Shown here: piece by piece, positions 19,411 through 59,000 of the stretch
Position numbering within the stretch: the first letter of the stretch is position 1
Layout: each line of letters opens with the position of its first letter
Origin: Epiperipatus broadwayi
Taxonomy: Eukaryota; Animalia; Onychophora
NCBI GenBank assembly: GCA_028023455.1
Contig: JAQFVV010000009.1
Location: 9,238,001-9,302,000, forward strand
Direction: 5' to 3'
Length of the DNA stretch: 64,000 bases
The notes under the pieces: generated by a model
What the model saw: the letters and a program-made list of their open reading frames with translations, nothing else
The model's database searches: none
What the model was told of the DNA's origin: nothing
Translations under genes and position numbers: made by a program

Positions 19411-20024
19411 CTAATGAAAACTAAACATATCCAAAAATCTCATTAAAGTAACATTTAACTTAAATTCTAATCTTTTTTTCATAATATAATAATATATTAT
19501 AGAATTTTTTTTATGTATATTAATATTATGAAAATAAAAAAAAGTAATATTATTTATCTATTACAAACTGCTTTTTAGACAGAAATTGAATATAATGCAA
19601 AAGTTGTATGAAAACTCATACATCATAGTCATTTCAAGTAACCACCCAGTATCAATCATCAAATGAATAGCTAGCCATTATTAACTGGACAGTAAAAATT
19701 CCATGACAATCAAAACTGACCACACAGAATGTGGATGTGCTAATTTTTTTTTAAAAAAAAAAGATTGTAAAATTATATAGTTTTTACAATTAGTAATATA
19801 AATCTCTTATATATTCAGTCACAGTATATTTTTTAGAACAATACATATTACAATAGAATGACAGCCTGTTAAGCTAATTGCGCAGACAAAAGCAAAACAC
19901 AATAAATATATTTAAACAGGCAAAATTCTCCATACAGTAGTGCCACTCAGTGCAAACCATAGTAATCAATGAATGGCTTAAGGCTTGTGCATCAAATCCC
20001 TATCTAGTGCCTACTCATCCAATA

Positions 20025-20066
20025 TCCCCAGACTAGTTTCTAGCTTGTGGCTTTCGTCAGTGAGGA
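20025..20066 (-). ncRNA. Intact minimal type I hammerhead ribozyme (family A)
   Basis: Minus strand TCCTCA-CTGACGA-A-AGC-CACAA-GCT-A-GAAA-CTA-GTC-TGGGGA: 6-bp helix I, full catalytic core, 3-bp helix II, palindromic ACTAGT helix III, GUC triplet (predicted cut between 20031 and 20030). Confidence 0.85.
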
Positions 20067-20205
20067 GCCTTGGATTTGAGAGCACTGCATCTAGATCTTA
20101 GGATCTGATGCAACACTCCAGCAGCCACCTTTTATCTCTACTTAACTACAAAACTATGAGAATCCAAGCTCATTAGCTCATATAGATCTGAACTCAGTTC
20201 AGTAC

Positions 20206-23172
20206 TGTACCAGTCAAAACATGTTTATCCATCTAACATGAGCTGGAACTCACAAAATGTACTTCAAATCCAATCAAGTCTGAGATTTAAGTCAGAGACC
20301 AGCCTGGATTCGAACCCACTCTCTACGCCCCAGATCAAATACCTAATGAATAACATAATAGTGATGGCACATGATAATTAATTTTAATCCGGCTGACTAG
20401 CAAAGCTGAGCAAAACAATGAGACATCTATTAACTATGACTAAATTAAAATGTACATAAGCATGGCTGTAATATGTGGAAGTGGAGGAAAAGGAATTCGA
20501 ACTACTCAAATAAGTTAGACAATGAAATATAGTTTAATATAATGACAAATTATTTATATACATTTATAAATTAAGTACATTAGTATATGTGTGAATGAGC
20601 AAGCAGTAGATGATTACATAGTGTCATTCACGGTATTATTTCACATATGCTCTTTATTAGCTAAATGATATATTATAAATAAACACACATCTTTGGTGGG
20701 TCCAATATTAAGATGCCAATCATTATTAGAAAGAAGTTACATAAAATTGCTATTAACGCTTTGGGTTATGGTTCTGAAACGTGGTGACTAACATATGATT
20801 TAGGGGAGCATTCTGAGATTCACTACAGATATAAATACAAACTATTTTCCTGCCATTACGGTCATGAAAATACATAAAATCCATTTGACAATTTATTGAA
20901 AATTATTTTCATTAACATTTACGAGAAGAACGCTTTATTTTTCCCCAAGGCATATAGATACTCTTAAATACAGAAATAAGTTACGATGGTGGGACTGTAT
21001 AAGACTGAAATAAATTTAATTAATAAAATAGAAGTAGTTGGCATTTATATATATTTTAAGCAGAGCGCAATTTTAATATTAGAGCATTAAAACTGGGTCA
21101 TGAAGCAAAAGAAATAAATATATGAAGAAGTTTGTGGTACTGACATTATAACCAAAAAATAACAGGAAAAGTCATGCTTCTGGACGAAAGATGAAGTGGA
21201 TGGGCATAGCGTGTGCCAGACTTAGGGATCACACTAGAGGCCTTTTTATACGAAGAAATGGATGGGCATAGCGTATGCCAGACTTAGGAATCATTGCCAG
21301 TGGCCTTTTTATATGAAGAAAGAATATGCATAGCGTGTGCCAGACTTAGGGATCACCACCAGAGGCATTTTAATATGAAGGTGTGAAAAGAAATCTATGG
21401 GTTCGAACTTGTCGCAACCCTCAGATTAAGACTAGAAGCACGTAATATATTTATATATGAAGATAGGCTAAATGTCAGTAACGCAGTAATGATGCATGTC
21501 ACTAACAACATTGAATAAATTTTACTGCTTTAATATAAATGACCCTTGTTTGAGTACTATAATTTAGACGAATAATATGCTATGCAGTATAATATATATA
21601 GAGAGATTTACATTTCATTTACTTAAAATATACTTGAAGATTTTATTTAGCAAAAGTAACATTAAGATTTACCCCCTTCCCTTACTGTTATTTTAAATAA
21701 ATAAATCCCACCTTCGTTGATTTTACGATAAATGGAATATATAAGTACTTTATTTGATATTTTAAGAGTATGTAAAAATAAAAAGACTGGCAGTTATAAA
21801 AAAATACTATTGGGTCACTCTTTCAAAATTTAAAAAGAACATTTAAAAAGATTTCAAAGCATTAATTAGCTTGAGTTCTGGATTCACCCTGGGTAGAAAA
21901 TCCAGAGTTAAAGAAATACATTTTTATCATAAATAAAATGTTGACTCGAAAAACAATCTGGCGAGTATGTTAATTAATAACGCATTATATTTTTAGGGAC
22001 GTTAATAACCTTGATGCATGAAGGTTTATTTAAAAGAAAGAAAAGATTTTAGGAATTCAACTCATCAGATTGTTTGAGATTGGCAAATTAATAACGAAAA
22101 TAGACATATAAATTCAAGTAATAAATAAATGACCACACCAAAATTAAAGAAAGTTACAGCATATGAGATAGGATTAAATTTGACATATTTAAAAAAAAGG
22201 TAAAATTAAATAACACATTAGAAGAAATCTTCATAGATGAGTTAGGCTAAATTTAGTTTGAGGTGATGGCTTGAAAAGTTACCTTGCAATTTTAAGAGTC
22301 CAATTTAGTAGTGCACATGCACGACAATCGAAATGCAAGTTCTCCTATGGCAGCCAGCTTCTATAAGCACACTAAAGTTCTTAAGTCGGACTTTTACTTT
22401 ACTCTTGGGCAGCAGACTGGTACGGCTGTGGAAGATGATGACCCACCAGGGCCAAGAAGGGTGGTGGATTCATTACTACATTATTTAAGTTTTAAGTGAC
22501 GTGTAATCTGTTTACAATCAGTTCTCTCAATAGTAGCTCTTCTCCTCTGTCTCTCAAAATTCAGCCATTTTATACTTTTTCTTTATCGATTGTTTTTGAA
22601 GATGCAACAGTAAGATAACGTTCAAAAATAAATTCAAATCTATTTCCAGATTAAAAATAGATTTGACAAAATGTTTATAACAAAAGTATCTCTAATCTTA
22701 ATCCCATTTTAAGTAAAAACTTTAATTAAAAACACCTTCCCCAGATTAAAACAACAGTGCTTCCAACCCTTTAATTATTTTTAGACAATTACTGTAGCAT
22801 CTTCCATATTGGATTTTACAAAATATACAGTTTAAAAGAAAAAAAACAAGCAATTTAAAAAGAAAAAGTTTAAAAAATAATGTATAATAAAATATTTAAA
22901 ACATCAACCTTTTGTTAGTAAGTTTTTGCTCCTATATATACATATTTGAGCTGCACCTATGTATTTTAATAAAAAGAATTAATAAGCATAAAATTAATAA
23001 TAATAAAAATGTTAATTTAAAAGTTAAAAACTTATAATTTAGTCGCACATCTCAAATATATATATAAAATATATACATATGACAAAAGGAGCAGGATGGG
23101 AAATAGGGATTTAAACACAGGTTAGTAGGTGGAAACATGAAGCTCAATCTTAAGCTAAGATTGACTGCTTCA
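20206..23172. mobile_element. ~3-kb non-coding TG...CA element (large solo LTR or non-autonomous transposon), copy A
   Basis: Termini TGTACCAGTCAA / TTGACTGCTTCA; 4-bp TSD GTAC (20202-20205, 23173-23176); colinear reverse-complement homolog at 41928-44489. Confidence 0.75.
21190..21380. repeat. 62-bp tandem repeat x3 inside the TG...CA element
   Basis: gcatagcgt(g/a)tgccagacttagg at 21204, 21266 and 21328. Confidence 0.9.
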
Positions 23173-25129
23173 GTACCCATACATTTTGATGTCTTTGGTT
23201 CTATAATAACCAGAGCCACCACTATCCTATTAGACAGGATTGGTATTAAATCACTAAACATCACATGATCACCATTTTATTAAAACAGGCAAAACTCTGC
23301 TTGCACTGAGCGGCACTATTATATGGAGAAATTTGCCTGTTTTAATAACAGTTATGAGCAAGCATAAGAAATGGTGATCATGTGATGTTTAGTGGTAATA
23401 AATATATTTAAAAACTGTATAAAATAATTTTAAATAAGATCTAAATTGCCATTAATTGATACCAAGTAATTATAAAAATTAATTCCATTATATCAAACAG
23501 ATAAACATCTAGAGACAAAACTGCTTATGAATTCAAATTTTGACTAACAAGTTTAATTAATAATTGAAAATAAACTTTATATAGGATATATGACAGCTAA
23601 GAACATCTTTCTGCAATTAAAATTACTAAATACTTCTATATGCTCTTACTTATTAATAAAAACGATTTAACCCAGTTGAGCTTCTTTTAAATATCAATTT
23701 ATCTCACTATCTTTAAATCTCTTAAACGAAATTCCTTGCATAGATTAGTGCAAGTGGCATTCCCTTGTACTCAAAGTCATTGGATGACGTCAGCTCTGAT
23801 TCTTCTTCAACTCTAACTTCTCCTTAATTCTTGAACAATTAATAATTCAATTTTTTTTTTTTTTTAAAGATTTATTCTTGATTTTTTTTAAAATCTGATG
23901 ATAAGTATTAGTAGTGAGTCCTCAAATTGTTATAATATATAAATCAGTTTTTAATTGTTCATAGAGAAGACTTGTCTAGGCATTCAGCCAAATAGAAAAA
24001 AAATTACAGAATGATTAATTATTTAGAGCAAAATAGATATAAGTCATGATGTCAAGTGCTCTATTAAATACTGATTTCACTGCATTTATCTGAAGCTCAA
24101 GTTTCACTATTGTTATTTACTGATGTTTGATTTTAAAAAGTATTTTTTAAAAAAATCAATATTTTATATATGTATAAAAATATTTTTATTTATTCAACAA
24201 TCCACAACCTTCTAATGCTATCAGATAGTTTAAATAGTTATAACAACTTATCTAAAGCAAAGGTTAATCTGAGAGACAGAAAGAACAGACTAAAATTAAT
24301 TTTTAAAGTTAATATTTAAATGTGATTAATATAAAGGTAAAAAAATATATTACTTTCAATGTTTTAAATTTATGTTTACAAAATAGTCTAAAGTTTTACA
24401 CTGAACTAAAATAAATTCTTTAAAAAGATATTTTTAAAATTTCAAAGAATATCTGTTTTCAAATTGTATCATCATTTCATCGTTATTAATAAAAAAAAAA
24501 ACTTTTTTATTGGATCTAATAAATATTTATAATTTTAAAGTTAAATTATCTATCTCAACTGTATGTTAAAATTAAAAAGTAATGATATGTATCGATGTTC
24601 TATAAAAATCTATTAGTATTGATAACAATATTACATAACTCTCATGTGTTGCTTACTCATGTTTCTGAGAATATTATTTTTCATTCTACTTTAAAGTCGT
24701 CTATTGTAAGCTTGAGTAATCAATGGACCCTAGATAATACTGCTACATCAAGAATGAAGTTAGAAATCAGTTTAAGAAAGGAAATATTGTAGCACTAAAT
24801 CCATCTGGTTTTTAATGATTACTCAAGCTTACAGTAGATTGATCTATAATAAGTTGAAGAGAATTGTTCTTGGGGAAACCTATTAGTAGATATTATTTGA
24901 TAAAACAACCTTTTCAATTGTTTCAATGAACTAGGTTTTAAAACTATAATTAAGAATTTATAACAAAAAATATATATATAAGATTACTGCCAAGAAAATC
25001 TATATAAATCTTTTGTTCACTTGTTAATTTATGGTGGTCTTGTTCATAAATTATCAATACTACTAACATAATATCTTTAACAAAGCTATTGCTCCATCAT
25101 TACTTAACCATAATTACACCCATCTAATT

Positions 25130-25720: not shown

Positions 25721-26048
25721 TTAAAATATATATACAGTCTACCCTGACCGCCATTGGTATTATTGTGAATATTGTAAATAGAGTTCTATTTTGATTGGCA
25801 GTTGAGAGTTCTTCCCAGAGATAATTTTCTTTAGAAAAGTGTGTTAAATGTATGAATGATTGTCATGCAAATGAGATATAAAAAGAACTCTTTCTCTCAA
25901 GGGTTATATTAAGTCTCTGCAGCAATAGCAGTTAAGAGGGGAAAAATGCTTCTGATAGTTAATGGCTTCTCTCACAAAAGTGAGAAAGTGCATGCAGAAG
26001 ATATAGATTAAATAGACATCACATGATCGCCCTTTTCTTATGCTAGCA

Positions 26049-28814
26049 CAGAGTTTCCCAACCTGTGGTACGCGAGTTGCTGGTTGGTGGTACATGAAAT
26101 ATAAACAATAATGGCGGACATAAAAAATATAAAAAAATTAAATCATAAAAATATCATAGAAACGTTTTTTCTATAATTCATAAAAATTATTTTAATTAAT
26201 AATATAATTTTTAATTAATAATATTATACAGTAAAGTTGTCAATATGTACAGTCGATGATTGAAAATCCGGCAATCGATATCATTTTTTTGGAGTGCACT
26301 TTTAAATTTAGCCATTAGCCATCAGTAACTTGAGATGTTGCCACTACTGTTGTGATGATGCTGCACTTTCGTCCACTTCATCGCGCAGCTTACAAATGAC
26401 AGGTTACTGTTTGTGATTGTATTGTCTTTGTTTATTAAAATTCATTGATGTCCATATTGATTAACTTTTTTTTTAAATAAGGCTTATTAAATAATTAATT
26501 AATTAAGTAAGCCATGGATCAGTGGGTTTGAACTGGTATGTGCCAAAATCTCAAGCAAAACATGAACAGTAATGTATTGCCAAGTTCTACAAAGGACAGG
26601 TCTGAAAATTCGGTGCAAAACATTGAAATCGTGCAATCTTCAGTTCTTCAAAGAGGTGTTAAGAGAAAATATTGTGATGAATATATAAAATATGGATTTT
26701 TGTATATTGAAGACGAAGACTGTCCTAATCCCAAGTGTGTAGTGTGTGGGGTAATGCTTTCAAATGGATGCATGAAGCCTTCATTTCTTTCGCGACATCT
26801 ACATACAAAACATACGGATTACAAAAACAAAGATTGTGATTTTTTTAAATGTTTAAAAGAGTAAAATAATGTGTCTATTTTATCATCTTACATTCTACCT
26901 GCTAATAAAGATAATGAACATGCAGTAGATGTTAATTATCATATTAGTTACCACATCGCCAAATGTAGTTATAGTCATCAAATAGGAGAATAATTAATTT
27001 TACCTTTGTATAAAGGATGCCATTAACCTTATGATAGACCAAAAATATATCCAAAAAATTAATTGTGTTCCTCTCAAGAAGAATTCACAATATGTCCGAG
27101 GATATCGAGGAGATAGTGATAGAGAGAATAAAAAAAAAGTAAATTTTCTCAATTCAAGTAGATGAGACAACAGACATAACAAACAATGCTGTATTGCTTT
27201 TTATTGCTAGGTACATTAAAGACAATGAATTTGAAGAGAATCTTTTACTTTGTTATTTTCTCTCCACACACACAATGGGTGAAGAAATATTTAAAGCTAT
27301 TGATAATTATTTTATATTGAAAGATATTAGTTGGTCAAACTATTGTGGATTGTGTACTGATGGTGCCAAGTCAATGGTAGGTTTATATATTGGTCTTCAT
27401 GGCCAGGTCTTAAATGTATCTCCTAATGAAATTTGGAGCCACTGCTGTTTCCATAGGCAGAATCTAGTAACAAAGCACCTTCCAGAAGAATTGAAACTCA
27501 TTGTCAATGATGTGGTGAAGATTGTTAAATTTTATAAAGAAAAGTTCCACAAACTCAATAATTTTTAAAGTTATGTGTGAAGACTTGATGAGTCTTCATA
27601 CTTCTCTACTTTTTCATACAGAAGTGAGATGGCTATCACGTGGTAAGGTGCTAACCCATTTATTCAAACTTAGACAAGAAGCACAGGTTTTTTGAAGACA
27701 ATCCTTTTTGGTTTTTTTGAAGACAATCCTTTTGATCTTTCTTTGAAATTGTATGATTTTAATTGGCTTCAGGTGCTTGCATATTTATTTGATATTTTTT
27801 TGCAAATAAATAACTTAAATTTGACACTGCAGAACAACTCGATAACGATCTTTAATGTTAATGATAAAATTGAAAGTATGATTAAGAAATTAGATTTTTG
27901 GAAAAAGTGTATCGAAAACAATCAACTGGAAGTATTCGAAACTCTACATATTTTTTTGTTTGAAAATAAGGTTAGTCTGTCTCAATGTATATGAGAAAAT
28001 ATAATAGCACATTTAACAGGATTAACATTGTCTTTCATGGAATATTTTCCAAAACCCAAAAACACAAATGATAATTGGATTTCAAACCCCTTCTATGAAG
28101 AAAATTTAGAAAAAACTACATCATTATCAATAAAATATAAAGAAAATTTAATAGAATTATTATGTGACAGAACTTTACAAGTAGAATTCAAATGACACAA
28201 TCTAATTAGTTTTTGTAAACATTAAAGAATATGAACAACTTTCTGAAAAAGCTCATAAATTATTATTACTGTTTACTAGTACGGAATTAGTAGAAAGACT
28301 TTTTCTTCATAAATTTTTTTAAAAAATAAGCATCGAAACAAATTGAACGCACCTGTAGACTTAAGGGTACATCTCACATCTTTTGAACCAAATTTCAAAA
28401 AATTATGTTCTTCGAAACAAGCACAAGGATCTCATTAAATTTATTTTATAAAAATATTTGATTATGATAAAATATATTAATTGGTTTTTTATAATTTTGT
28501 GTTTTTATTAAAACCATTTATTAGTAAACGAAATATGACAAAATAGTAGATAAATATGAAAATTTGAACAAACATATACATACATATATGTTACAGTGAA
28601 TTTATAATCGGGCGTAATGTTTAGGCGTGTTTCAATGTAATTTGTCTCTTATGTGATGTGAATACATGGTCACCCAATAATATTTATAATGCAAATAAAA
28701 TAACACACTCGCAATAATAAATTTTACGAAATACAATCATTTTTATGAAGTGGTTCAATTTAGCGTGATGCACTACCAAGTGGTACACAAGCCAAAAAAT
28801 GTTGTGAAATGCTG
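26049..28814 (+). mobile_element. Full-length decayed Buster-family hAT transposon
   Basis: Left end CAGAGTTTCCCAACCTGTGGTACGCG; degenerate right TIR ATGTTGTGAAATGCTG; target TGCTAGCA (26041-26048) echoed as GGCTAGCA (28816-28823, 1-bp offset). Confidence 0.9.
26514..28438 (+). pseudogene. Buster/ZBED5-like transposase pseudogene
   Basis: BED finger [80 protein letters not shown]-terminus QAQGSH*; split by stops and frameshifts into ORFs 26538-26864, 27194-27568 and 27692-27994. Confidence 0.92.
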
Positions 28815-28948
28815 CGGCTAGCACATAACTGTTATTAAAACAGGCAAAACTCTCCATACAGTAGTGCCACTCAGTGCCAACTAGAGTAATCAATGGATGC
28901 CAGAAGGCTTGTACATAAAATCCCCATCTAGTGCCTACTCATCCAATA

Positions 28949-28990
28949 TCCCCAGACTAGTTTCTGACTTGTGGTCTTTGTCAGTGAGGA
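28949..28990 (-). ncRNA. Hammerhead motif, family A (G8 to A core change)
   Basis: TCCTCA-CTGACAA-A-GAC-CACAA-GTC-A-GAAA-CTAGTC-TGGGGA; helix II is GAC/GUC. Confidence 0.7.
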
Positions 28991-29322
28991 GCTTTTGGAT
29001 CTGAGAGCACTGCACCTAGATCTTAGGATCTAATGCAACCCTCCAGCAGCCACCTTTTATCTCTACTTAACTACAAAACTATGAGAATAAAATTTGAAAA
29101 ACACAATAATATTTTCAATCTCAGCTCAATAGCTTATATAATCATATGGGTACTGAACTGAGTTCAGACCTATATAACTATATGAGCTAATGAGCTTGGA
29201 TTGAAAATATTATTGTGTTTTCAATTTTATTCTCATAGTTTTGTAGTTAAGTAGTGATAAAAGGTGCTGGAGTGTTGCATTAGATCCTAAGATCTAGGTG
29301 CAGTGTTCTCAGATCCAAAAGC

Positions 29323-29364
29323 TCCTCACTGACAAAGGCCACAAGCCAGAAACTAGTCTGGGGA
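29323..29364 (+). ncRNA. Hammerhead motif, family A (G8 to A core change)
   Basis: TCCTCA-CTGACAA-A-GGC-CACAA-GCC-A-GAAA-CTAGTC-TGGGGA; helix II is GGC/GCC. Confidence 0.7.
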
Positions 29365-30684
29365 TATTAGATGCACTAGATGGGAATTTTATGCACAAGC
29401 CTTCTGGCATCCATTGATTACTCTGGTTCTCACTGAGTGGCACTACTGTATGAAGAATTTTGCTTGTTTTAGATTAAATAGACTTAATGAAGTTGGGTTT
29501 GTATGTATTAGTGATAATTATAACCAAGTACAATTATTAATGAACTGTGACTGATAGCCATGAGTAAACAAATGTAGTAAACTTAATTTGCTTGTTGTTA
29601 TCCCCAAATTATTATGGGGAAAATAATTATTATTATATCATAATTTTCTTTACATATATATTTTTATTGTTAATTCAGCAAACATAAAAGTGTTTGCTTA
29701 TTTCATTATTAACGTTATGCAATCACAGCTAGATAGAAACTCCTCTGATTACAGCAGTTTATGCAATAGACTACAGATGGTGTAATTAGTGGTTGATGGT
29801 GAGAGGTATATAGTGATTAGAGAGAAAAAAAGATGTCATTACCTAGTCAATATTTAAGGGAGTTTGATATATGTAATCTCTTGTTATAGAACATTTATAT
29901 GGAATATATAGATCACTATATGAGACTTTAGAAGATAAATGGGAAAATAGGCTGAAAACTGGAATAGATGTATTATTAATAGCAAAACAATTCTGTGACC
30001 CTAATATTCCAGAAGATATACCTTATACTGAATTACTAGATAATCCAAACACTTATTTTCAATCAGCAGTAACAAAGAGAATAGCATGTTTATGTTTTTG
30101 AATAAGGAAGCAATTACCCTGAGAGAGCTTTAATTTAGCTTTAAGCAAAACAGTGTGAATTTCACATCATATCTTGAAGACATACTACTAGACCAACTGC
30201 TCTATGGGATGTGGAAGCATAATCTTCAAAAAATCTTGCTTAGCAAAGGTGATTTAGCATTTAAAGCAGCCATCAGAAAGTCATATAGCACACCATGTCA
30301 TGTTGAAAAATGCTTCAGAATTTAAAACAGTTTCAGAAGGGGAAAAAAAAAATCAACAAAGGGTAAATAAAGTTGTAACAGAAAAGTCGCTTAAAAACTC
30401 TGCTAGTAATAGGCCTATATGATATTGTTATGGTAGGGTTGGTCACATGAACATATTTTAAAAATAAAAAACATAAAATATATAGTATTAAAGGCCACTT
30501 AGCTCAGGTGTATATGAAAAAGCTGGATAATGTGAAAATTATGCCGGGCTTTAAATCGAGGGGAGGACATGAATGTAGTAGAGTAGATTAAATACATTTA
30601 AAAATTCAACTAATGGTCAAATTACATTGTTATTTGTGGATTTAAAGTTACAATGGAAATTAACGGGTGAGCAGGATTATGTCA

Positions 30685-30858
30685 CTAAGAAGAAATTAAA
30701 ATTGAAGAAGATAAATGTAGTGGCCACAGATATGAATGGTAATAGAATATACATCTGTGGAAAAGTTTGTTCTAAGAAGAAATTAAAATTGAAGAAGATA
30801 AGTGTAGTGGCCACAGATATGAATGGTAATAGAATATACATCTGTGGACAAGTTTGTT
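30685..30858 (+). repeat. 87-bp in-frame tandem duplication in the Gypsy protease-proximal region
   Basis: KKKLKLKKI(N/S)VVATDMNGNRIYICG(K/Q)VCS twice in ORF 30627-30875; repeat starts at 30685 and 30772. Confidence 0.95.
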
Positions 30859-32454
30859 CCAGTGGTTGTAAATAATAGGAAAAAATTATTGTTGCTTGTA
30901 GTAGAAAGAAATATGATCCTCTCCTGGAACAAAATTGGTTTAAATGGCTGGGAATATGTTTAAAAATAATTAATAAAGTTGGAAACGAAAGTCAGAAATA
31001 AATTTTCCAAATTATTTAAATAGGAAATAGTGTCCTGTTAATATTGAACTATCAAAAGAAGCACAATCAATGCTGTTTAATTAAACCATGCAAAGTCCCC
31101 TTTGTAATTAAAACTAAAGGTGGAATAAACAATAGTGGATATGGTAAAGAAAGGAGTGTTGACACCAGTCGAAGATTCATCGTAGCTTACCCCTGTTGTA
31201 GTTTTAATAAAACTGGATGGAACAATTTGTTTTTGTGGAGATTATTGGATCCCAGTTAACAAATGGATAAATGAAGCTGAATATCCTGTTCTAAATATGC
31301 ATGATGTGTTGGTATCATTACAGAGAGTCATGGTCTTTGCATAAATTGATTTGAAATTAGTGTTCCATCAAATTCCAGTTATTGAGAATCCTACTGAGCA
31401 GTTGACAGTGTGTATTCATGTTGGATTCTTCAGGTACAACAAATTATTTATTTATGGAATCATGGTGGCTTTGTCAAGCAAAAATAGATATGCTATTGCA
31501 GAACATCAAGAGATTGATATGTTACTGCAGAATATAGAGGGAGTTATTCCATGGATGATATTTTGATTATAGCCTGAAGAAAATCTAAAAAACGAGTTAT
31601 GGAGGTAAGCTCTAAGTTAAATAATGTAGAAGCAAAACTGAATATTTCACAAAGTGTTTGGGCAACCTTGGAAATACAAATAAGTTTTTTTAGGGCATAT
31701 GATAAATAAAGGGAAATATCTAAACCTGGAAAAGATTAGAGTAGTGAAAGAAGTGGTTATTCCCAGAAATGTCAAAGAATTTAAAGTCTTTTTGGGACTA
31801 CTTCTAAAAAAGCTTTCTTAAAAGATAAATCACATTAATTATAATTGTTGTATGAGTTATTGCAGAAGGGTCAATGAAGAAAATGGAACAATGAGCATGT
31901 GGCAGCCTTCAGAAAAGCTAAAAAAATTTCTGATGTTACATCAACTTTTAGTACAACATTATAGCAATCTGGAAGTTACACAGAGGTTAAATTCTCCATA
32001 CAGTAGTGCTACTCAATGCAAGCCAGAGTAATCAATGAATGCAAGAAGGTTTGTGCATAAAGACCCCATCTAGTGCCTACTCATCCAAAATCCTTGTGGC
32101 TTTCATTTGTGAGAAGTCCTGGATCTGAGAGCACCTCACAAAGCTTTCAGTCCAAGATGACAACACAAAAATGTTTTCAGTTCAAGCTTATTAGCTTGTA
32201 TAATTGTATAGATCTGAACTCATCAGTATCCATACTTTTAGGTATCTTTGATTCTTTAATAACCACAGTCATCACAATCCTATTAGACTGGATTGATATT
32301 AAATCACTAAACAACAGATTATCATCATTCTTTATGCTTACACACAGAGGCTAAAGTCTTCATAGAATAGTATCACTCAATACAAGCCAGAGTAATCAAT
32401 GGATGCAAGAAGGTTTGTGCATAAAATCCCCATCTGATGTCTACTCATCCAGTA

Positions 32455-32496
32455 TACCCATACTAGTTTCTAGCTTGTGGCTTTCATCAGAGAGGA
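32455..32496 (-). ncRNA. Hammerhead motif, family A (core intact, GUA triplet, weakened helix I)
   Basis: TCCTCT-CTGATGA-AAGCCACAAGCTA-GAAA-CTA-GTA-TGGGTA. Confidence 0.7.
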
Positions 32497-32639
32497 GCCT
32501 TGGATCTGAGAGCAATGCACCTAGATCTTAGGATCTAATACAATCCTCCAGCAGCCACCTTTTACCTTATTAGCTAATTATAAAGCTTCAAGTCACATTA
32601 GATTCGAAGATCTAGGTGCAGTGCTCTCAGATCCAAGGC

Positions 32640-32681
32640 TCCTCACTGATGAAAGCCACAAGCGAGAAACTACCCTGAGGA
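32640..32681 (+). ncRNA. Hammerhead motif, family A (helix III and triplet mutated)
   Basis: TCCTCA-CTGATGA-AAGCCACAAGCGA-GAAA-CTACCC-TGAGGA; perfect helix I. Confidence 0.6.
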
Positions 32682-33079
32682 TATTGGATGAGTAGGCACA
32701 TGATGGGGATTTTATCCACAAACTTCTTGCATTCATTGATTACTCTGCTTGCATTGAGTGTCACTACTGTATGGAGAGTTTAGTCTCTGTGTAAACAGCT
32801 TGTGTAAGCATAAAGAATGGTGATCATGTGGTGTTTAGTGCTTAATACCAATCCTGCCCAATAGGATTATGGTGATTGTAGTTATTAAAGAACCAACGAC
32901 ACCAAAAAGTATGGATGCTGAACTGAGTTCAAATCAATACAACTATACAAACTAATGAGCTTGAATTTTGGTTTTTATTTTGGACTCAAAGCTTTACAGT
33001 TAGCAAATAAAATAAAAGATGGTTGCTGGAGGGTTGCATTACATTCTAAGATCTAGGTATAGTGATCTCAGATCCAAGC

Positions 33080-33121
33080 TGCTCGCTGCTGAAAGCCACA
33101 AATTAGAAACTAGTCTGGGGA
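33080..33121 (+). ncRNA. Degenerate hammerhead motif, family A
   Basis: CTGCTGA-AAGCCACAAATTA-GAAA-CTAGTC-TGGGGA; core A6 and helix II are mutated. Confidence 0.55.
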
Positions 33122-35934
33122 TATTGTATGAATAGGCACTAGATGGGAATTTCAAGCGCAAACTTTCTTGCATCCATTGCACAAACCTCCTTGCATCCAA
33201 TGATTACTCTGGCTTACACTGAGTGGCACTACTATATGAGGAGTTTAGTCTGTGTGTAAACAGCTTGTATAAGCATAAGACTGGTAATCATGTGACATTT
33301 ACTCGTTTAATCTGGAAATTACAAACACTACTGTTGCTTCTGAATATAGAGCTGGGGCTGTTATTGCATATTATTATCATGGTGAAGAGCATTCAATTTC
33401 TTATGCCTCTGGAACATTTTAGTCAACTGAGAAAAATTCTAGTCACCTGGATAAAAAAGCTTTGGCAATAATATTCACAGTAAAGACATTTTACCAGGTT
33501 GTTTATGGTCAGAAGTTTGTAATTTACACTGATCATCGTTCATTGCTGGGAATCTTCCAAAAAAATAAAAACACACCTGATTATGTGAGACAAAGGCTTG
33601 TATGATGGATAAACTTATTGGCAACTTATAACTATGAACTGATCTCTAAACCAGGAAATGAGATTGTGCATGCAGATGCATTATCAAATTTGCCTGTTAG
33701 AGAAGATATGAAACAGGAATAGCATGGAGAACCTAACAGTGAAAAAATTGTGAAGTGGACTTCTAATAATCCTGAACATAGGAAATTGATTAAGTGGATC
33801 CAAGAAGGATGGCCAGAGAAACATCAAAATTTTGTAGCAATGGCAATTTAATATGCATGTCACAATATGTCAATATATAATCGGTGTATATTAAATAGTG
33901 ACTGAATACTGATACCTATAGAGGAACATAACACAGTATAACACCCTGGAGTGGTAAAGATGAAGGCTCTGGCTCATTTTTACATGTAGTGACCTAAAAT
34001 AAATAACATACAAAAAAAAATAAAGAAGTGTTCCAATTGTCAATCTACAGCAGATCTTCCAAAGAAAGCATTCAAGCCATGGTTATAAAACAAAGAAACT
34101 ATAGGAATGTGTTTTCTTGGATTATGCTAGACTGATAAATGAATATCAAATTCTGTTGGTTGTGGATCCATATTTAAATTGGGCCAAATACAAACTAATA
34201 AAAATTGTGAACACGGAGAATTACCATAAAGGCATTACAGGAAGATTTTGCTATCCACAGTTATCCTCGGATTTTGGTATCAGATAATGGGACATTATTT
34301 ACTTCAGAAAGATTTAAAGACTATGTGTTGCACAGAGACTATATGACATGTTCTTCTGCCAACATATCACCCTGCTTCAAACAAACTTGCTGAAAAAGGC
34401 AGAATGAATTTGAAAGCAGCTTTGAAAACTATTAGTATAACTGAATTAAAAGATGCCCTAATAGAAACATAAATTATATCTAGTGCTTCAAAAACTAAAT
34501 CATCTGCTGAATTACTGTTTGGGAGGTAATGATGTATGCATTTATCGAAACTTTGCTGACAGATAGATCACTGAAGGAATAATGGTGGTGAAAAGAATAA
34601 ATCTAATTTAAGAAAATTTGATATTGATGAAGCTGTTTGGGATCAAGATACTGTAAAAAAGATATGGACTGCAGTTATCATAGTTGAAATTGTATCTGAA
34701 GTTATACATGTTTTTAGGTTTAAGAATACATTGGTATAAGAAGGCATATTAATCATTTACATGAAAGATTGATATGCCAATCATATCCAGAAAAAATCCT
34801 ATTACAGTCAATCCTAAATTAGAAAATTTAAATTAGGGCTTAAATGAGAACACGGCTCCTCCCACTCATGATGAAATATTAACTGTTGAACAAGGTGTGG
34901 GAAGCAGTGTCCGAATCAGTAATTGTTATTATCAGAAAAAGGAGATTGAAGTGAAGGCCAAATTAATTATACTCCAAGAAGCTAGAAAATTAGAAAACCA
35001 CCAGACAGATTTAGGAATTATTTTCTAGAATGAGGACTGATACACTGACTGGTGCTAATATCATTATCAATATTGTAAATAAAATATTATTTTGATGTGT
35101 GTAATTAGTGCTGGCAGTTGAGACAATTTCCTACCAAAAATTCATTCTAGAAAAATGTATTAAATGTATGAATATTTGTTACGCAAATGAGATATAAAAA
35201 GAACTCTCTCTCTCTCAAAAGTTATATGAGTCTGTGCAGCAGTAGCAGTTGAGAAGAAAAAAGTGCTCCTGATAGTTAGTTGCTTCTCTCAGAGAAGAGG
35301 GAAAAATACATACAAAAGATATAGTTTAGCGAGATAGAATAAAAATATGTTTAAATGTATTAGTGAAAACTGCAAAATTAAAGGACTGTACAATGGAGAA
35401 AGGTAGTAGACTCATTTTGCGTGCTGTTATCCACAAATTATTATGGAGAAAATATTATTATATCATAATTTTCTTTATGTATATATTATTACTGTTAATT
35501 CAACTTAAGAATAAAGTATATGCTTATATCATTATTACTGTTATGCTATTACATCTGGGTAGAGATCCCCATGAATACAGCACAGTCCAAGCAAATTCTC
35601 ATTCAGGTAACCAACTAATTCTTGGTCAATAAATAGGTATCTAGCTATTTTTAAGTAAAGGGATTTATCTAGGTTATTGTTTTCTCCAGTTTTTCTCTAG
35701 AGGGATATTGGAAAGATGACTGTTTTGCAATGAACTATGTAAACATAAATTTGTATATATCAACAACATATATAATAAATAAATTTGCATAATATTAATT
35801 ATGACATTTTATTTTATTTAAAAAAAGGCATACACAAAATAATTTATTAAGTAGTTTTACGACTATTGCACTAAGAGCAACAATTCAACCTCTTCATAAT
35901 TTCACTCATAAGGTTCTGAAATCAGCTATCTTAA

Positions 35935-39663: not shown

Positions 39664-39679
39664 TTATTTTGTAATCTTA

Positions 39680-40006: not shown

Positions 40007-40097
40007 CTAAGCAATAAATACAATTAAAAATAAAAATATTAATTACTTTTTTATCTTCAGTTTTTTCAATAGTTTTTGAAAATAATAAATGTATTAC

Positions 40098-44489: not shown

Positions 44490-44530
44490 TAGTTTTTTCC
44501 TAAATTTGGCACCCAACATGTGGCACAAAT

Positions 44531-46622: not shown

Positions 46623-49319
46623 GCCATTTAAAATTTAAAAAATAATACTGTTAAAGTATTTAAGAAAGTTGTAAATGGTATGATAAGTCCGAAATAGTAA
46701 TTAGCAAAACTCTGAACCATTGCTCCCTGGCTATCTTCTGATTTATATCTATTATCCAATAATGAATCATTATCTCAGGTCATAAATGAAAACACAGAAT
46801 TTTATTTTATTGTGAACTAAAAAAGCTACCAAGTTTCTTTTAATAACTTGATTTCCAGCACATGAAATTATTATTATAGTATTTTGAAATCTATAAATAT
46901 TCTATTACATACTTTAGTAATTCACCTGTTACATAAAATGGTGTCCCAAAATGAAGTGTGATATGTCTACATACATGGTAGACAAGAGTGACCAGAAAGC
47001 TCTATATAAGCCAAAGGAACAAATAAGTTATAAAGAATTAGAGTTGGTTATCATAGAAAGACAGTAGAGAAAGAGAAGTAAAAACAGAGCAGCACTAAAA
47101 GGAAAATAATATAAAATAAATCCTAAAAAAATTTCGACTTCTTATATTAGGAAAGTTGAAGTTAGGAATATTTAAATAAGATTAGAAAGGGAGGGTACTA
47201 AGTAAATGATCCAATAATAATATAATAACTGATAAAGTCAGGAAATATTTGATTTATCCTAAAAGAATCCAAATAGCTTGATCAACAACAACAAAAAAAT
47301 AAACCAAAGTGATAACACAGAATATGAATAAACAGGAGATTAGTAATATTGGGAATGTATACAATAAAAAAGACAAAAATGAAGAGTAATACTTACCAAC
47401 ATTTAGTTGGAATATTAAAAGAAAATGAACTGAAACTGAAGTTTCTCTGGTCTATGAATATTTTCTTACTGCAATTAGAGTGTTCCTATGATAAATCAAT
47501 ACTTATTTTATTGATTTTTGTAATGATTAGATGCTGAAAATAATTTAAAGCCTTATGCTTAAACTACTATGAGTTGGTAAAATTCTTAAAATATATATAT
47601 ATAGGGAAAAAATCATAAACTAGTATTGGAATTTATTGTTGATGAAGTCAGAAATGAAATGTGAGATTTAATTGACTTTGTTCTCTTTAAAACTCCTTAT
47701 TAGCTGGAAAATTAAAAAAAAATATGCATTACATATGTTTCTAAATGTCATATAAAATTAACACAATTAAGGATTTAAATTAAATATTTATATGTATTGC
47801 AGAATTTGTGCAAACATGACAAAATTATCAAAAATCTCATATCTGGTACTATAAAAAGATTTTATATTTGTTGGCTAATTAACAAAAGTTTCATACTTAG
47901 TTGTTTAATTCCTGGTCTCATAAAGATATTTGTTGGAAAATTTATCAAAAAAATTCATTCATGGTCTTTTTTTATTATTATTATTTTTGAATACAGCCTA
48001 AAAACAGTAAAATGTTTCCAATGTACCTATATGATATACATCGATTATATTGCATCAGAAATTTACAAAGTTTTCAGGAGAAATATTATAAATCAAACTT
48101 CAACTCATTCAAAAATGACTTTCTTTTGTTATACAATTTTCTATTTTAATTTAGAAAAAATATTGTATGTTATTTTAAAAATATATTTGTAAGAATTTAA
48201 ATTTCTAATATTGATTAAAAAATAGGCAGTTATCAGAATAATGTGTTAAAATAATTTTTTGTAAATGAAATTAAATCTGTCTGTGTCTTAAAGCTAATAG
48301 ATTATTTGAATTAAGTCATTATGTTTACTTAATTCCTATGTTAATTATATTTATGGAATTTAATATTGATAAAAATTTGTCTAGCTACATAAATAATTTT
48401 ATGTAATCCTAAGAGTTGTGAAGCCAGTTAATGAGAGCTAAAGAAAGAATTGAATGCAAGAGAGATAAGAAAAACAGTTAAGTTTTAAAGCTCAAGTGGA
48501 GTTTATATTCATAGCTATTGGAATAATGTACAGTTCTAAAAAGACACGTGGCTAGAACTCTTTAGACCAATACTTTTTAACTATCTCACAAACAATATTT
48601 ACAATCCAATAAAGAATCATTACTTCAAACCATATATGCAAACTATACAAAATTTTATTTTATTGTAATCTAGAAAGTTACAGTTCTTTAAATAATTTGT
48701 TTTCCAATATGTAAGATTATTAATATAGCATTTTTGAAATACATATTTCTGTCTTTTATTGCACAATTTAGCAATCCAATATTAGATATAATTAAGCCAC
48801 ATACAATCCTTAAAATATTCCGTTACTATTTGTATCATATATTCATTGAAATTTCCAAGATCTAGTTAAATTACTTCACTGCTCTCCAATGTCAAATTTG
48901 CTTTGCAAACATAAAATGAATCCATTTTCATTCACTTTACCAGTTCTTACAAGGATAGCCAATCTGACAAATTGATATTAATTAGGATTAATATAAATGG
49001 GTTTGTTTTATGTTGGCAAAGCAAAGTTGACAATAGAGGGCAATGAAGTGATTTAACTAGATTTTGGAAAGTTTATTGGTCCAATAATTAAATACTGTAA
49101 GCATGATATTAATTAGTATTTATAGATAAATGCAATAGGTTGTGTTACTCATTATAAAATAGATATATTGGTGTCACTGAATGATTTATTTATGTTACAA
49201 TTAATAACAATCTGAATAGGGAGCGTGTGTGTATATATATATAACAATAAAAATAATAAATGTAAAGGTAATTAACTACTGTATACAACCTTTCAATTTG
49301 CAGAAATACTTTCAGTTAA

Positions 49320-49501
49320 TTCCTTAATCCTTCTCGACTGCTGTTAGGTTAAAAAATTAATGAAATACTTAATTTCCATTATATTTTTTATCTTTATTGT
49401 TATTATAATATTCCTTAATCCTTCTCGACTGCTGTTAGGTTAAAAAATTAATGAAATACTTAATTTCCATTATATTTTTTATCTTTATTGTTATTATAAT
49501 A
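49320..49501. repeat. Perfect 91-bp tandem duplication
   Basis: ttccttaatccttctcgactgctgttagg...ttattataata begins at 49320 and 49411. Confidence 0.95.
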
Positions 49502-50309
49502 GTTTTTAATTAACAAACATTTTATTTGTATTATATATATATAGAATTGCCTAAAGATTTATTTTAAAAAATTCTGACGTTCTATATACATATATTCATG
49601 AAAAAGATTGTGAGAATATTTTTTTAAGCATTAACCTCATTGTCTTTAATAAATAAATGCTTCGAATAGAAAACCACTTAACTGGTTAACTTCTCATACA
49701 GTAATCAGATTAAAATTAATTTGGTATTTATTTCAAGTAGTAAATTCAAATTGTAGTCTATTTTACTTCTGATATCAATATATAAAATGGTTGACATACA
49801 AAAAAAATTATTCTTAGACTACAGTCATGATATAAATTAAAGAAATGCTACAAAAAATGCAACCATCAACCAAGCTGAAAACAGGCATTACATAATGTAG
49901 TGATTTGAGAATTTGTTAATCAAAAACTATTATAGAGATTTTAATACATTAAAAAGACCTTTACAGTGATGGTGTCACAGTAAGAATGCTAACTTTAGCT
50001 TAATTTAAAACTTGCTAGCAAATTTCTCTCTCTTTTTTTCAATTTGTTAACAAAATATAATTTCAATAATTTTTAAATATTTAATAATTATGGGTATTTC
50101 ATATTTCATTTCTAATAAAGAAAGTACAATATGCTTTATATAAAATAAGATTCTAGACTATTCTTATTTGACTTTATTGCTGATTAAGATATGTTTTTTG
50201 AAACTAGTTCTGTAAACCTAGTATTATCCAGTTTACATTTTAGTAGTTGGTTGTTTTATATATATATATATATATTAAATACTGACTAATGCTATACTAG
50301 TAATAATAA

Positions 50310-53045: not shown

Positions 53046-53099
53046 ACTAAAGTATGGAGAACTATACAAATGTAATATGCAAATTAATGTAAAGTGATT

Positions 53100-53480
53100 A
53101 AAGATACCATTTTCGTGCAAGAGAAAAAAACATGCATTTCATCTGTTGATTGATGTTGGATTGCTTGCTATATAACATGCTTCTTTTACTTTCTGTTTGG
53201 TGTCTTTCAGAACAAAGAACAATTGCTGTAGTTGGTTGGAAAACATGACCAGTGGCCCTTTCATATTCGGCGAAAATTGAATTACCTTCTAGTTTAGTTA
53301 TAGACATATTATAAAGGTATTTGTGCTGTGCTATTCTGGTTGCAATGTTAGTCCTGGTTTCTCCATAATATGAAGCTTGGCAATTATTCCGAGGGCATAC
53401 GATTTTATAAATGACTTGAGATGGTAGTTTAGATGTGATTCTATCTTTGATATACATAAAAGTTTCATATAAATATATTC
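53100..53480 (-). pseudogene. Penelope-like element GIY-YIG endonuclease fragment
   Basis: KDRITSKLPSQVIYKIVCPRNNCQASYYGETRTNIATRIAQHK..SIFAEYERATGHVF in ORF 53098-53589 has the VIY..C..C..YYGET.R..R..QH signature; RT is absent. Confidence 0.85.
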
Positions 53481-55269: not shown

Positions 55270-55393
55270 GGCTAATGGCTTTATTGCTCAGGAGTTCATA
55301 AGAAGCTTGAGTATCAGACCTGCAAGCACCAGAATCGATTCTGGGACTTCCTAATCCCAAAGTTGTATGCTCTATCATTGCGCCAAACCATGC
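55270..55393 (-). mobile_element. tRNA-derived SINE
   Basis: A-box-like TGGCGCAATGATAGAGC and B-box-like CCCAGAATCGATTCTGG on the minus strand; tail shared with 6800-6845. Confidence 0.55.
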
Positions 55394-55721
55394 AGGAATG
55401 TTTCAGGTATTATAATGTAATACAGAGTTTATATTTAAAAAAAAAAAAACACAATTATGTAATATATTAAAGTTTTTGAAATAATTACTCATTAATTCCA
55501 GACAAAAAGTACATAAATATAGAGTACAATGTTTAAAATGTAAGTTGTTTAAAGTGATAAAAAATAATATCATTCAATGTTAAATTTAAGCTCTTTAATT
55601 AAAATAAAATAAAAAGTTTCCAAAAGTTTTCTAAAAGGTAGCCACCTAATGCAAGCTAAAGTAATCAATAGATGCCATAATGTTATGCATTTAATCCTAT
55701 CTAAAGCCTACTCATCCAATA

Positions 55722-55763
55722 TCCTCAGATTAGTTTCTAGCTTATGGCTTTCATCAGTGAGAA
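55722..55763 (-). ncRNA. Hammerhead motif, family A (near intact)
   Basis: TTCTCA-CTGATGA-AAGCCATAAGCTA-GAAA-CTA-ATC-TGAGGA; one mismatch in helix III. Confidence 0.7.
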
Positions 55764-56047
55764 GCCTTAGATCTAAGAGCAGCATATCTAGATCTTTAGT
55801 TGTGTAAGCATAAAAAAAGATAATCATGTGATAGCTTAATAATAATCCTAACCAAAGAATATTGGTTACTATGGTTATTAATAAATCAAAATATACAGAT
55901 ACTGAACTGGATTTCAGATCTGTATGACTAACAAGGAAATTATCTTGAATTGAAAACATTAATTTGTTTTTAATTTGAGCTCACAGGTTTGTGCTGGAGA
56001 GATTCATTAGATCCAAAGATCTAGGTGCATTGTTCTCAGACCCAAGG

Positions 56048-56089
56048 TCCTCACTGATGAAAGCGATAAGCTAGAAACTAGTCAGGGAA
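56048..56089 (+). ncRNA. Hammerhead motif, family A (core intact, helix I weakened)
   Basis: TCCTCA-CTGATGA-AAGCGATAAGCTA-GAAA-CTAGTC-AGGGAA. Confidence 0.7.
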
Positions 56090-59000
56090 TATTGGATGAG
56101 TAGATATTAGATAGGATTAAATGTACAATCTTCTAGCATTTATTGAGTACTATATCCTTCCACTAAATGACCCTATTGAGTAGAAAAAGTAGCTACTTTT
56201 TTAACAGCTTGTGTAAGGATAAGAAATGCTGATCATGTGATGGTTTAATGTTTCTAAAAGTTAATATATTAACACATTTACTGACTATTAAATAGAATAA
56301 ATCTTTATTAGAAAGTAAATTTTCATAAAAATATTTGAGTGAGACAGTTATTTAAAATATTAAATTTATGTTATGGGAGTCAGATGACCAGCCATATGGT
56401 AAATGATTATTTTATTTCTATTTGTTGTTTGCTTTTATGGGAGAGGCATTAACTTTGAAATTTTAATTTCTTGATTCTACAAACTTTACTTACCATGAAA
56501 AAATTTAGGTAATCTTAAATATTTGATGCAACAATTGTAGATGGCTTCTTCAGCAGAAATTTTTATTTTTGACTGTCTGGAGTTAATAAGAACCTGATTA
56601 ATCTTGGAAGATATGGCTAGATTTTGTAATTGTTTAAAAGATTTTGTTTTGCATTTGAAATGGATATTTTATGGCTGATTTTTGTTGCAACGTTTAACTG
56701 TGATAATTATTTGCAATCAAGAATGATTTCTTGGTAATTAGATGACTGTTTAATTGAAAGTAGATTCTTACATGGAAATCTTCTTGATAATTTTTTTAGA
56801 TGTCTATGTAATAGCTGGATTTGATATATATATAGTATGTTAAACATAATCATTTATTAAGATTAGATTGTGGGGCAATTGGTTACAATCCCTCCCCATT
56901 TCCTACTAATCTCTCTATTTTATTAAAAGATATGTAAGTAAAAATTATTTCTATAAAAAGACTAATTTGAATTTTCAAATTTTTAAGTTTTTAGCAGTGC
57001 ATCTCTCATCTCAGCTCTATCATATTGCAGTCATCGCCAGTAGAAAAAGTCAGCCACTTTCTCACACTATATATGCATTTCATGACAACTTCACTCTTCA
57101 AGTGAAACAGAGATATCAAACAGCTAAATCTCCCTGATCATATTGACACTTTATTACCTTTTATTATATCCCTCTCATATAAGATAGGGAACACCTTATG
57201 TATACATTCTAGTTTTATAATTTCATTAATGCACTTCTCATATGAACTCCTTATATCATAACTATCTGGCAGTGCAGAAAATCAGACCATTCCTTTCTCA
57301 TTAAATGTGCCTTTTGTGAACAAAGACAAGATGAGCTTGAACTTGCATTTACTTAAATAAAAATGATTGATTATATATATGTAAGAGAGTAGATTGTGAG
57401 CTTCAGATCTAACATTTTAAAATAAGATTACCATTTATTGGATGAAATAATGTATTACCATAGCTACAATTGTATATTCAAATAAAAAGAAAACTCATAT
57501 AGAAGTGTAAAATTTAAAAAGTGTCCTATTTTTCATAATGAACCAATCAGAATGTTATTTATAATTAATTCACTTAATACAATACTGTATGTGTGTCTTT
57601 TTTTTTTTAAAATCTCTGTACTAATAAATTTTCTTTCCTTTTTTTCTACCATTAGGCTTTATTACATAAGAAAAATAAAATGAAGTATGAGTACTTTATC
57701 ACAATACAATTATGTGAATTTTATAAGTGATACATTTATATGTGCAAAACGATTGGATTATCATAACTAGAATATGTAGAACTTACATGTTCATACAATT
57801 GCCCTAGAGGAGCAAATAAATAGTTTAATTTAAATAACCAAGGTAAAACTGAGATAAAACTGATACTTTGTCATAATATGTATCATTAGAATAAAATGTT
57901 TTTTTATTTGTTACCAACAGCCTAAAAACTTGGAATAGCCTACATTAGTTAGTAGTGATATGGCATCATGAGTGATCATGAGATCTTAGGGTAACAAAAT
58001 TCCACACTTAGTCTTAACATATATATAAGAAAATATAATGCATATCACTATACATACATATATATATATATAGAAATAATAACGTAATAAATGTTCTTAA
58101 ATAATAGAGATGTTAATATAAAAGATTACCTCACTTTCATGGAAACTGTGAGGTCTTAATATCAGTGGGTCAATAATTAAAATAATATAACTTGATAAAA
58201 TAGTCACTTATTAAATTTTTCTTGTTAAGAATCCTCTTTGCACACATACATATTCACATAACTGTGCAAAGCAATCTGAATCAGCATATACTATGCATCA
58301 TAATTTGCTGATGAAGTAAATTCTTCACACAATTCCTAATATAAATAGATATATATGTTAAATGTTTGATCAGAGGAGCAAATAAGCATTTTTAGCATAG
58401 CCAATTGCATATATAATGAAATTAAATATATACATATTATTTTAAATAAAGCAGCATCAATAAAATTCTTATAAATTTGTTCTTACAAAGTATTCACCTC
58501 TGGTATGCAGCAAGCTAAAGAACACATCAGTTGGTCTTATGATTTTGCCATCATATTTTCAAAACATTATGGAGAAATCCTGAATGAAACTTTTCAGTGC
58601 CTTTATACTACATCTACAAAAGGCCAAGAAGTCTTATTTCCTTACAATGAATTGGACAACTCTATGTACAACTTAATTGTAATTAGTTAAACTGCTTTAA
58701 TGAAATAATCTATTTCTATTTTGTAAAATTCAACAGCAGCCCATTGGAATCTGTGTTGTCTCTCAACATCCAGTTCTGGCTTTCTACCTAAAAAATTATT
58801 AAGACATTTAGACTGATTAAGGCAATAACTATTCAACCCAAAAGTTAGTAAAGATTTTATTTCATCCAGTCATGACTAAGTTTTTCAAGCACTAATTACT
58901 AAACAAATTCTTTATACTTATGCATTCAAAGCATTAAAGAACATTCTGTAGATCATCATTTGAATTGATAAGAATCACCACCATACCATAAATCTATGAG

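Follow-up and report, generated by a model that had tools for sequence, protein, structure and literature searches.

A high-copy hammerhead repeat family of Epiperipatus broadwayi, probably a non-autonomous retrozyme copied by Penelope-like machinery

Animal retrozymes without long terminal repeats (non-LTR retrozymes), described from axolotl (Rtz_331 and Rtz_353), mussel, and coral, carry one type I hammerhead ribozyme per non-coding unit of 150-450 bp; their units occur in tandem, are low in GC, have target site duplications (TSDs) longer than 4 bp, and are present in tens of thousands of copies (Cervera and de la Pena 2020, PMC7229834). As described by Craig et al. (2021, PMC8557442), insertions of Penelope-like elements (PLEs) are heavily truncated at the 5' end and contain partial tandems, which give pseudo-LTRs (pLTRs), as well as a 5'-truncated copy that lies inverted on the 5' side; an extension, the tail, is often found at just one end. 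A recent preprint joins the two, concluding that vertebrate non-LTR retrozymes co-occur with PLEs, are related to their pLTRs, and are non-autonomous PLE derivatives (Li, Clavereau and Pollet 2026, 10.64898/2026.07.22.740005). Here we describe family A, a hammerhead repeat found in a stretch of 64,000 nucleotides from the onychophoran Epiperipatus broadwayi (assembly GCA_028023455.1, contig JAQFVV010000009.1, positions 9,238,001 to 9,302,000 of the forward strand; the whole stretch is called the window below), which resembles the animal retrozymes in all the features just listed. We consider it very likely that family A is a high-copy, non-autonomous animal non-LTR retrozyme, with one type I hammerhead per unit, that is copied by the reverse transcriptase (RT) and GIY-YIG endonuclease of PLEs. 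Our conclusion is the same as that of Li et al., whose material was vertebrate and whose argument was phylogenetic, whereas ours is built on the insertion footprint in an AT-rich genome of 5.6 Gb and on a family in which we found no sequence shared with a resident pLTR. The view that retrozymes ride on Penelope-like machinery is supported here by the anatomy of insertions and not by phylogeny.

The assembly comprises 18,588 contigs and holds more than 84,000 hammerhead motifs with an intact core; an exact 30-mer of the variant with helix II AGC/GCU occurs 6,071 times. Family A therefore adds a very large and cleanly analysable family to the animal retrozymes. The unit measures 440-456 nt, at the upper edge of the retrozyme range, and its 456-nt consensus has 39.5% GC (window, about 27%). 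It is non-coding, the longest stop-to-stop frame of the circular consensus being 67 aa, and has no LTR, primer-binding site (PBS), or polypurine tract (PPT). In 10 of 11 tandem monomers the successive predicted cleavage sites are 440-460 nt apart, and the units can be aligned throughout. Plant LTR retrozymes (PMC4918200) are likewise non-autonomous, hammerhead-processed, and presumed to pass through circular RNA intermediates, but they carry type III hammerheads in true LTRs, a PBS, a PPT, and 4-bp TSDs and use Ty3/gypsy machinery, none of which is present in family A. A text search of the literature with the motif returned only unrelated primer-type matches. Family A would be a new family of a known class, the animal non-LTR retrozymes or non-autonomous PLEs, and appears unrelated in sequence to the published members as far as these could be compared.

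The family and its layouts are common to related organisms. None of the sequencing runs listed for the family is recorded as RNA. When contigs of four organisms were searched with one unit, each run yielded 2,514-10,942 that were at least 80% like it, and the contig joints either go back by 450-458 nt (tandem) or change strand (foldback); these contigs derive from libraries of unknown type and speak to presence and layout, not to transcription. Contig depth in the four runs peaks on the hammerhead and about 60 nt to each side, as would fit the parts most common to the subfamilies.

The hammerhead is best seen in the minus-strand RNA of window positions 20025-20066. Helix I has 6 bp (UCCUCA/UGGGGA), the core reads CUGACGA...GAAA, and the 3-bp helix II (AGC/GCU) is flanked by an A on either side and closed by loop 2, CACAA. 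Helix III is A-(CUAG)-U, followed by C17. Two base pairs here would leave a loop of 2 nt, which the energy model forbids, so helix III consists of one A-U pair and the palindromic tetraloop CUAG. The palindrome ACUAGU can form an intermolecular helix of 6 bp, with a computed energy of about -6 kcal/mol. Animal hammerheads with a one-pair helix III and a palindromic tetraloop cut poorly alone and well as dimers (PMC4209133, PMC7229834), and axolotl HHR_Amex1 has the same 1-bp helix III and palindromic tetraloop, implying dimer cleavage. The preliminary description had proposed a minimal type I hammerhead that must dimerise through a palindromic helix III, and this architecture bears it out. The PLE pLTR hammerheads (Cervera and de la Pena 2014, PMC4209133) share with family A both the palindromic 15.2-16.2/loop 3 and an unpaired nucleotide between A9 and 10.1. 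They differ in that helix II of the minimal PLE form (min-HHR) has 6-8 bp against 3-4 bp in family A, whose 6-bp helix I extends into a long stem in the 'canonical' animal architecture.

The unpaired A on each side of helix II had been singled out as unusual. It is real and family-wide, the A...A arrangement around a 3-bp helix II being dominant in the genome with 74,117 motifs against 10,117 with another 5' base, nearly always U (counts that leave N7, position 3 of loop 2, and the six helix II bases free; reversed-pattern controls gave 0 in every case). It is less unusual than claimed, because PLE hammerheads conserve an unpaired extra nucleotide between A9 and 10.1 (PMC4209133), and the 5' A of family A is this same nucleotide. 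With the flanking As set aside, the largest subfamily opens helix II with a G-C pair (GGC/GCC). A very uniform subfamily of about 10,000 copies reads U-GGC...GCC-A, in which the U lies opposite the 3' A and can pair with it; this supports the register of the preliminary description and indicates that A.A is tolerated rather than required. A non-Watson-Crick base of helix II also has a parallel in axolotl HHR_Amex2 (PMC7229834), as U.U there and A.A in family A. The less usual feature is the extra A between 11.1 and G12, for which the hammerhead literature cited here offered no precedent. The series A.A, U-A, A-U, and G-C at the base of helix II is ready-made for testing which non-Watson-Crick geometries are tolerated beside G12-A9/A13-G8.

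Copies in the window were located with a pattern for the core and helix III (CTGANGA, 13 free bases, GAAACTAGTC; up to three mismatches). It matched nine times, against 0.39 +/- 0.60 expected from 100 shuffles of the window, none of which reached nine. The match at 50180 has no family context and is a chance match; the other eight are 42-nt hammerhead copies, for which we also use the position of the pattern match as a name:

20025-20066, minus strand: hammerhead 20031, the sole fully intact copy in the window, with predicted cleavage after GUC
28949-28990, minus strand: hammerhead 28955, G8>A; helix II compensated (GAC/GUC)
29323-29364, plus strand: hammerhead 29329, G8>A
32455-32496, minus strand: hammerhead 32461, core kept; cleavage site GUA (allowed); helix I weakened, its first pair broken
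32640-32681, plus strand: hammerhead 32646, 16.1 and 16.2 mutated; helix II broken
33080-33121, plus strand: hammerhead 33086, A6>C; helix II broken
55722-55763, minus strand: hammerhead 55728, loop 3 CUAA, palindrome broken
56048-56089, plus strand: hammerhead 56054, core intact; helix I weakened

The preliminary description had placed eight hammerheads at these coordinates, all of them exact, and had called the first intact, rightly, as no other copy in the window is free of core or helix damage. It had also treated the eight as copies of a non-coding repeat; the repeat is non-coding, but the count needs correction, since the eight motifs belong to four insertions, three of which are head-to-head inverted pairs. 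The occurrence of copies on both strands reflects these pairs, together with one direct pair 440 nt apart. Core positions C3-U4-G5-A6-N7-G8-A9...G12-A13-A14...N16.1-U-H17 are unchanged in 20031, 32461, 32646, 55728, and 56054, and several of the core-intact copies are damaged elsewhere, in helix I, in helix II, or at positions 16.1/16.2. An Rfam search of the whole window found no match at the gathering threshold; at a permissive threshold Hammerhead_1 (RF00163) aligned over its full length (positions 1-45) to exactly 20025-20066 on the minus strand.

Constraint on the ribozyme was assessed across genomic copies. Among 42 copies whose selection did not require an exact hammerhead, departures from the consensus amount to 5.6% at the 12 core positions and 8.6% in the flanking stem (Fisher P = 0.02); in the same copies loop 2 varies in 3.8%, loop 3 in 4.8%, and the free N7 in 43%. 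In an alignment of 64 copies helix II shows covariation between subfamilies at its first pair (A-U in 36, G-C in 24, unpaired in 4), helix I is paired in 90% of cells, and over the whole structure 47 cells are changed on both sides, a number that none of 500 shuffles reaches (29.5 +/- 4.4). Helix II is also compensated in rarer forms, GAC/GUC at 28955 and, among the sampled genomic motifs, AAC/GUU and AUU/GAU. RNAalifold predicted no consensus structure for the 64 copies, because decayed copies break pairs, and the named structure was counted instead. Separately, G8>A, a change that kills the ribozyme by turning CUGACGA into CUGACAA, is seen repeatedly, in the unrelated loci L005 and L016 as well as at window copies 28955 and 29329. 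When N7 is C, C7-G8 is a CpG, and methyl-CpG decay is the best reading of the recurrent change; ribozymes of the N7=C subfamily thus carry a built-in decay hot spot at C7-G8, and the harmless change C7>U may have the same CpG origin.

The flanks of the hammerhead pair with each other. In a constrained fold of the 154-nt consensus, helix I continues into an imperfect stem of about 55 bp (-52.6 kcal/mol), placing the hammerhead, in this model, at the tip of a long stem formed by its own flanks. A full monomer folds at -142.8 kcal/mol in the sense orientation (z = -4.4, none of 100 shuffles as good) and at -97.3 kcal/mol in antisense (z = -2.2); across 11 monomers the median z is about -3 in sense and -1.45 in antisense, with sense lower in 9 of 11. 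Minimum free energy folds of the 53-nt motif gave no hammerhead shape (z from -0.7 to +1.4), as expected for a dimer-type motif, and were used neither way.

The insertion footprint was obtained by mapping a consensus trimer on the window and on 70 genomic loci (L002-L073 without L004 and L044); 104 arms resulted. Their 3' ends are clustered, 77% of 103 falling in unit positions 101-180 (17% of the unit), at two preferred sites about 55 nt apart: E1 at about 113-125 (...GCCTGTTTTA) and E2 at about 165-176 (...GGTTTAAC). The 104 5' starts are scattered over the whole unit, and arms reach 1,019 nt (2.2 units). An apparent hot spot of 5' truncation just upstream of the hammerhead proved to be ascertainment, as those loci had been chosen for an exact hammerhead and the wider sample has dispersed starts. 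There are 39 head-to-head arm pairs; among the 24 with both ends classifiable, 21 combine E1 with E2, three are E1+E1, and none is E2+E2 (binomial P about 1e-4 against 50%). One arm only, on either side, therefore has the tail of about 55 nt in 21 of 24 pairs, a quantification of the PLE 'tail' that could constrain models of PLE integration. TSDs of 10-15 bp were found at eight insertions, namely window insertions 3 and 4 and six genomic foldbacks (L006, L008, L010, L012, L021, L022; 10-13 bp, by direct reading of the flanks). The four window insertions with hammerheads are composed as follows:

19909 to 20204, minus strand: insertion 1, a single 5'-truncated arm, unit positions about 246-456 then 1-122, ending at E1 (the short 3' end); 92-94% identity (BLAST with the consensus)
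28817 to 29167, minus strand: insertion 2, left inverted arm, with hammerhead 28949-28990
29145 to 29471, plus strand: insertion 2, right arm, ending at E1, with hammerhead 29323-29364
31981 to 32580, minus strand: insertion 3, left arm, about 1.3 tandem units with internal deletions, ending at E1, with hammerhead 32455-32496
32581 to 33308, plus strand: insertion 3, right arm, about 1.6 tandem units, ending at E2 (the long 3' end), with hammerheads 32640-32681 and 33080-33121, 440 nt apart
55638 to 55798, minus strand: insertion 4, left arm, of a diverged subfamily, with hammerhead 55722-55763
55799 to 56250, plus strand: insertion 4, right arm, ending at E2, with hammerhead 56048-56089

The TSD of insertion 3 has 15 bp (31966-31980/33309-33323, 14 of 15 matching) and that of insertion 4 has 10 bp (55628-55637/56251-56260). 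The two arms are 89% identical in insertion 2, about 81% in insertion 3, and about 80% in insertion 4, and window copies are 70% to 98% identical to the consensus. For the window itself this is an ordinary result: its copies are old, mostly inactive relics, six of the eight ribozymes being counted as mutated in the core, in helix I, in the cleavage-site stem, or in the palindrome of helix III.

Point for point, with the exception of tail length, this layout matches the PLE footprint of PMC8557442: copies are 5'-truncated and partly in tandem, one truncated copy is inverted, and a single end bears the tail, which is about 55 nt long in family A and 30-40 bp in published PLEs. The retrozyme or Penelope pLTR-like system suggested in the preliminary description is thus supported by the footprint, the architecture of helix III, the size of the unit, the lack of an open reading frame (ORF), the tandems, and TSDs longer than 4 bp. 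Family A departs from the published animal retrozymes in being mostly head-to-head foldbacks of up to about two units rather than long tandem arrays. It departs from PLEs in having no RT/GIY-YIG ORF, and since no PLE coding remnant lies next to it in the 41 loci or the window compared, we file it not as a PLE but only as PLE-mobilised.

By analogy with the described systems, mobilisation would proceed as follows. In multimeric transcripts, two neighbouring hammerheads would pair through the palindromic ACUAGU of their helices III to give a double ribozyme, and cleavage after GUC would release unit-length RNAs with 5'-OH and 2',3'-cyclic phosphate ends, which a host tRNA ligase would circularise. 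Target-primed reverse transcription, beginning at E1 or E2, would then copy the circular or multimeric RNA. Such a template would explain arms longer than one unit.

Several observations weigh against this account. The Hammerhead_1 score at 20025-20066 is 13.9 bits against a gathering threshold of 34, although a score below threshold is expected, because the model penalises variants with a short helix II and III. Covariation beyond the one helix II pair is slight (overall score 0.123 against 0.114 shuffled), and related sequences can beat shuffles in such a test without any structure. The core-conservation test (5.6% against 8.6%) is mildly biased, the copies having been located with up to six mismatches in the 30-mer. 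No TSD was found at insertions 1 and 2, two of the four in the window. Neither the 30 sampled loci of the commonest PLE family nor 17 regions lying downstream of GIY-YIG matches showed any similarity to family A, and blastx found no PLE coding remnant next to it in 41 loci or the window. Finally, circular RNA expression has been demonstrated for published animal retrozymes, whereas family A is known here from its DNA; its cleavage, RNA ends, and circles are predictions drawn from the published relatives.

The resident PLEs are abundant, with 26,099 genomic candidates for one RT piece, 10,241 GIY-YIG candidates, and open frames of up to 901 aa. The commonest family sampled, made up of a PLE beyond the end of the window and its relatives, ends 3' in a tRNA-like module and, after it, a hammerhead unlike that of family A (CUGAAGA, then a bulged A, helix II of 6 bp, and GAAAC). 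This hammerhead is of the min-HHR type (PMC4209133), and in it, in the 6-bp helix II, and in the tRNA-like module the resident family is unlike family A. The PLE beyond the window, 3.8-5.9 kb past its end (L043:3800-5850, G000:C9), is degraded, with RT and GIY-YIG frames broken by stops, as are others at L045 and L063. A cluster at G000:C12394:20942626-20950119 (L074) has 901-aa open frames 3,135 nt apart, plus inverted copies, and apparently consists of intact elements; the 700 nt past the ORF are extremely AT-rich and bear only half of a hammerhead-like string (...AUAGUCGAAACG) and no family A sequence.

One alternative is that family A is itself the terminal (pLTR) region of an autonomous PLE, seen only as heavily 5'-truncated copies. 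The hammerheads of PLEs are indeed found in pLTRs close to the 3' end, 5' truncation is typical of PLE copies, and the partner search covered a tiny sample of a very large PLE population. The arms, however, up to their maximum of 1,019 nt, contain only head-to-tail 456-nt units, and E2 continues into the next unit position with no ORF between; the 47 PLE 3' regions sampled have no sequence in common with family A, no PLE coding remnant stands beside it in the 41 loci or the window, and the commonest PLE has its own hammerhead, with the 6-bp helix II and the tRNA-like module before it. We regard this alternative as improbable.

If family A is instead a retrozyme copied in trans, it may lack any sequence-related autonomous partner altogether, the PLE enzyme recognising the hammerhead-tipped stem of about 55 bp rather than the 3' sequence. 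This more specific proposal is speculative and, in our estimate, unlikely to be correct as it stands. Were it true, the pairing of an E1 arm with an E2 arm would record two priming events of a single integration, one per nicked DNA strand and 55 nt apart on the template, and family A would be a natural reporter for the formation of foldbacks and tails by PLEs, the mechanism of which has not been worked out.

A different possibility is that family A is a SINE-like or satellite repeat (SINE, short interspersed nuclear element) spread by the machinery of long interspersed nuclear elements (LINEs) or by unequal crossing-over, with the hammerhead as a passenger, as was once thought for Schistosoma Sm-alpha and newt satellite 2. 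E1 does hold two T4 runs that could be an RNA polymerase III terminator, tandem units exist, and a tRNA-like repeat abuts copy 20031. The unit itself, however, has neither a poly(A) or microsatellite tail nor a tRNA head, and the tRNA-like sequence next to copy 20031 is a repeat in its own right, present at other places with no family A beside it. Nor do LINE-driven SINEs or satellites produce dispersed copies with TSDs and 39 head-to-head pairs, which makes this explanation very improbable. Least credible of all is a foldback or MITE-type DNA transposon (MITE, miniature inverted-repeat transposable element) whose inverted arms contain a hammerhead-like string by chance: most insertions are indeed inverted repeats flanked by TSDs, but the arms are unequal in length and their inner junction is rarely at the same unit position in two insertions, fixed ends rather than partial tandems and a 55-nt tail on one arm would be expected of a cut-and-paste element, and the core is still intact in more than 84,000 motifs, among which helix II has compensated variants.

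The tRNA-like repeat next to insertion 1 occupies window positions 20205-20440 on the minus strand, contains a tRNA-like B box (GGTTCGAATCC), and ends at a fixed 3' position, ...GGTACA. It is young: its genomic candidates number at least 2,614 and are 94-97% identical. It is probably a SINE derived from a tRNA. Insertion 1, which is no foldback, abuts the 3' end of this unrelated repeat. We had considered it as a foldback or a tRNA-headed composite and rejected both, as the adjacent 204 or more nt belong to the independent repeat; a 9-bp apparent TSD of insertion 1 was likewise rejected because it lies inside that repeat.

Three further pieces of family A lie in the window and carry no hammerhead:

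19282 to 19366, minus strand: isolated fragment of the family's 3' region, unit positions 102-188, 85% identity
23169 to 23396: small head-to-head pair of 3'-terminal unit parts, without hammerhead and heavily 5'-truncated, with a minus-strand arm at 23169-23298 and a plus-strand arm at 23294-23396 that ends at E2
26013-26050: family fragment without hammerhead, found by BLAST with the unit consensus

The window has other features as well. A Pfam search with two long window ORFs returned no match. Fragments of LTR-retrotransposon pol, with an RNase H/RT-like translation broken by stops, directly flank insertion 3 at 33330-33620, 31093-31338, and 34081-34230. Perfect or nearly perfect two-copy tandem duplications, unrelated to family A, are found at 49319-49501 (91 bp x2, 100%), 59473-59557 (42 bp x2, 100%), and 30685-30859 (87 bp x2, 97%). 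Window positions 8001-10000 show a local spike in GC skew (+0.40), with an AT skew of +0.18, in an otherwise flat profile.

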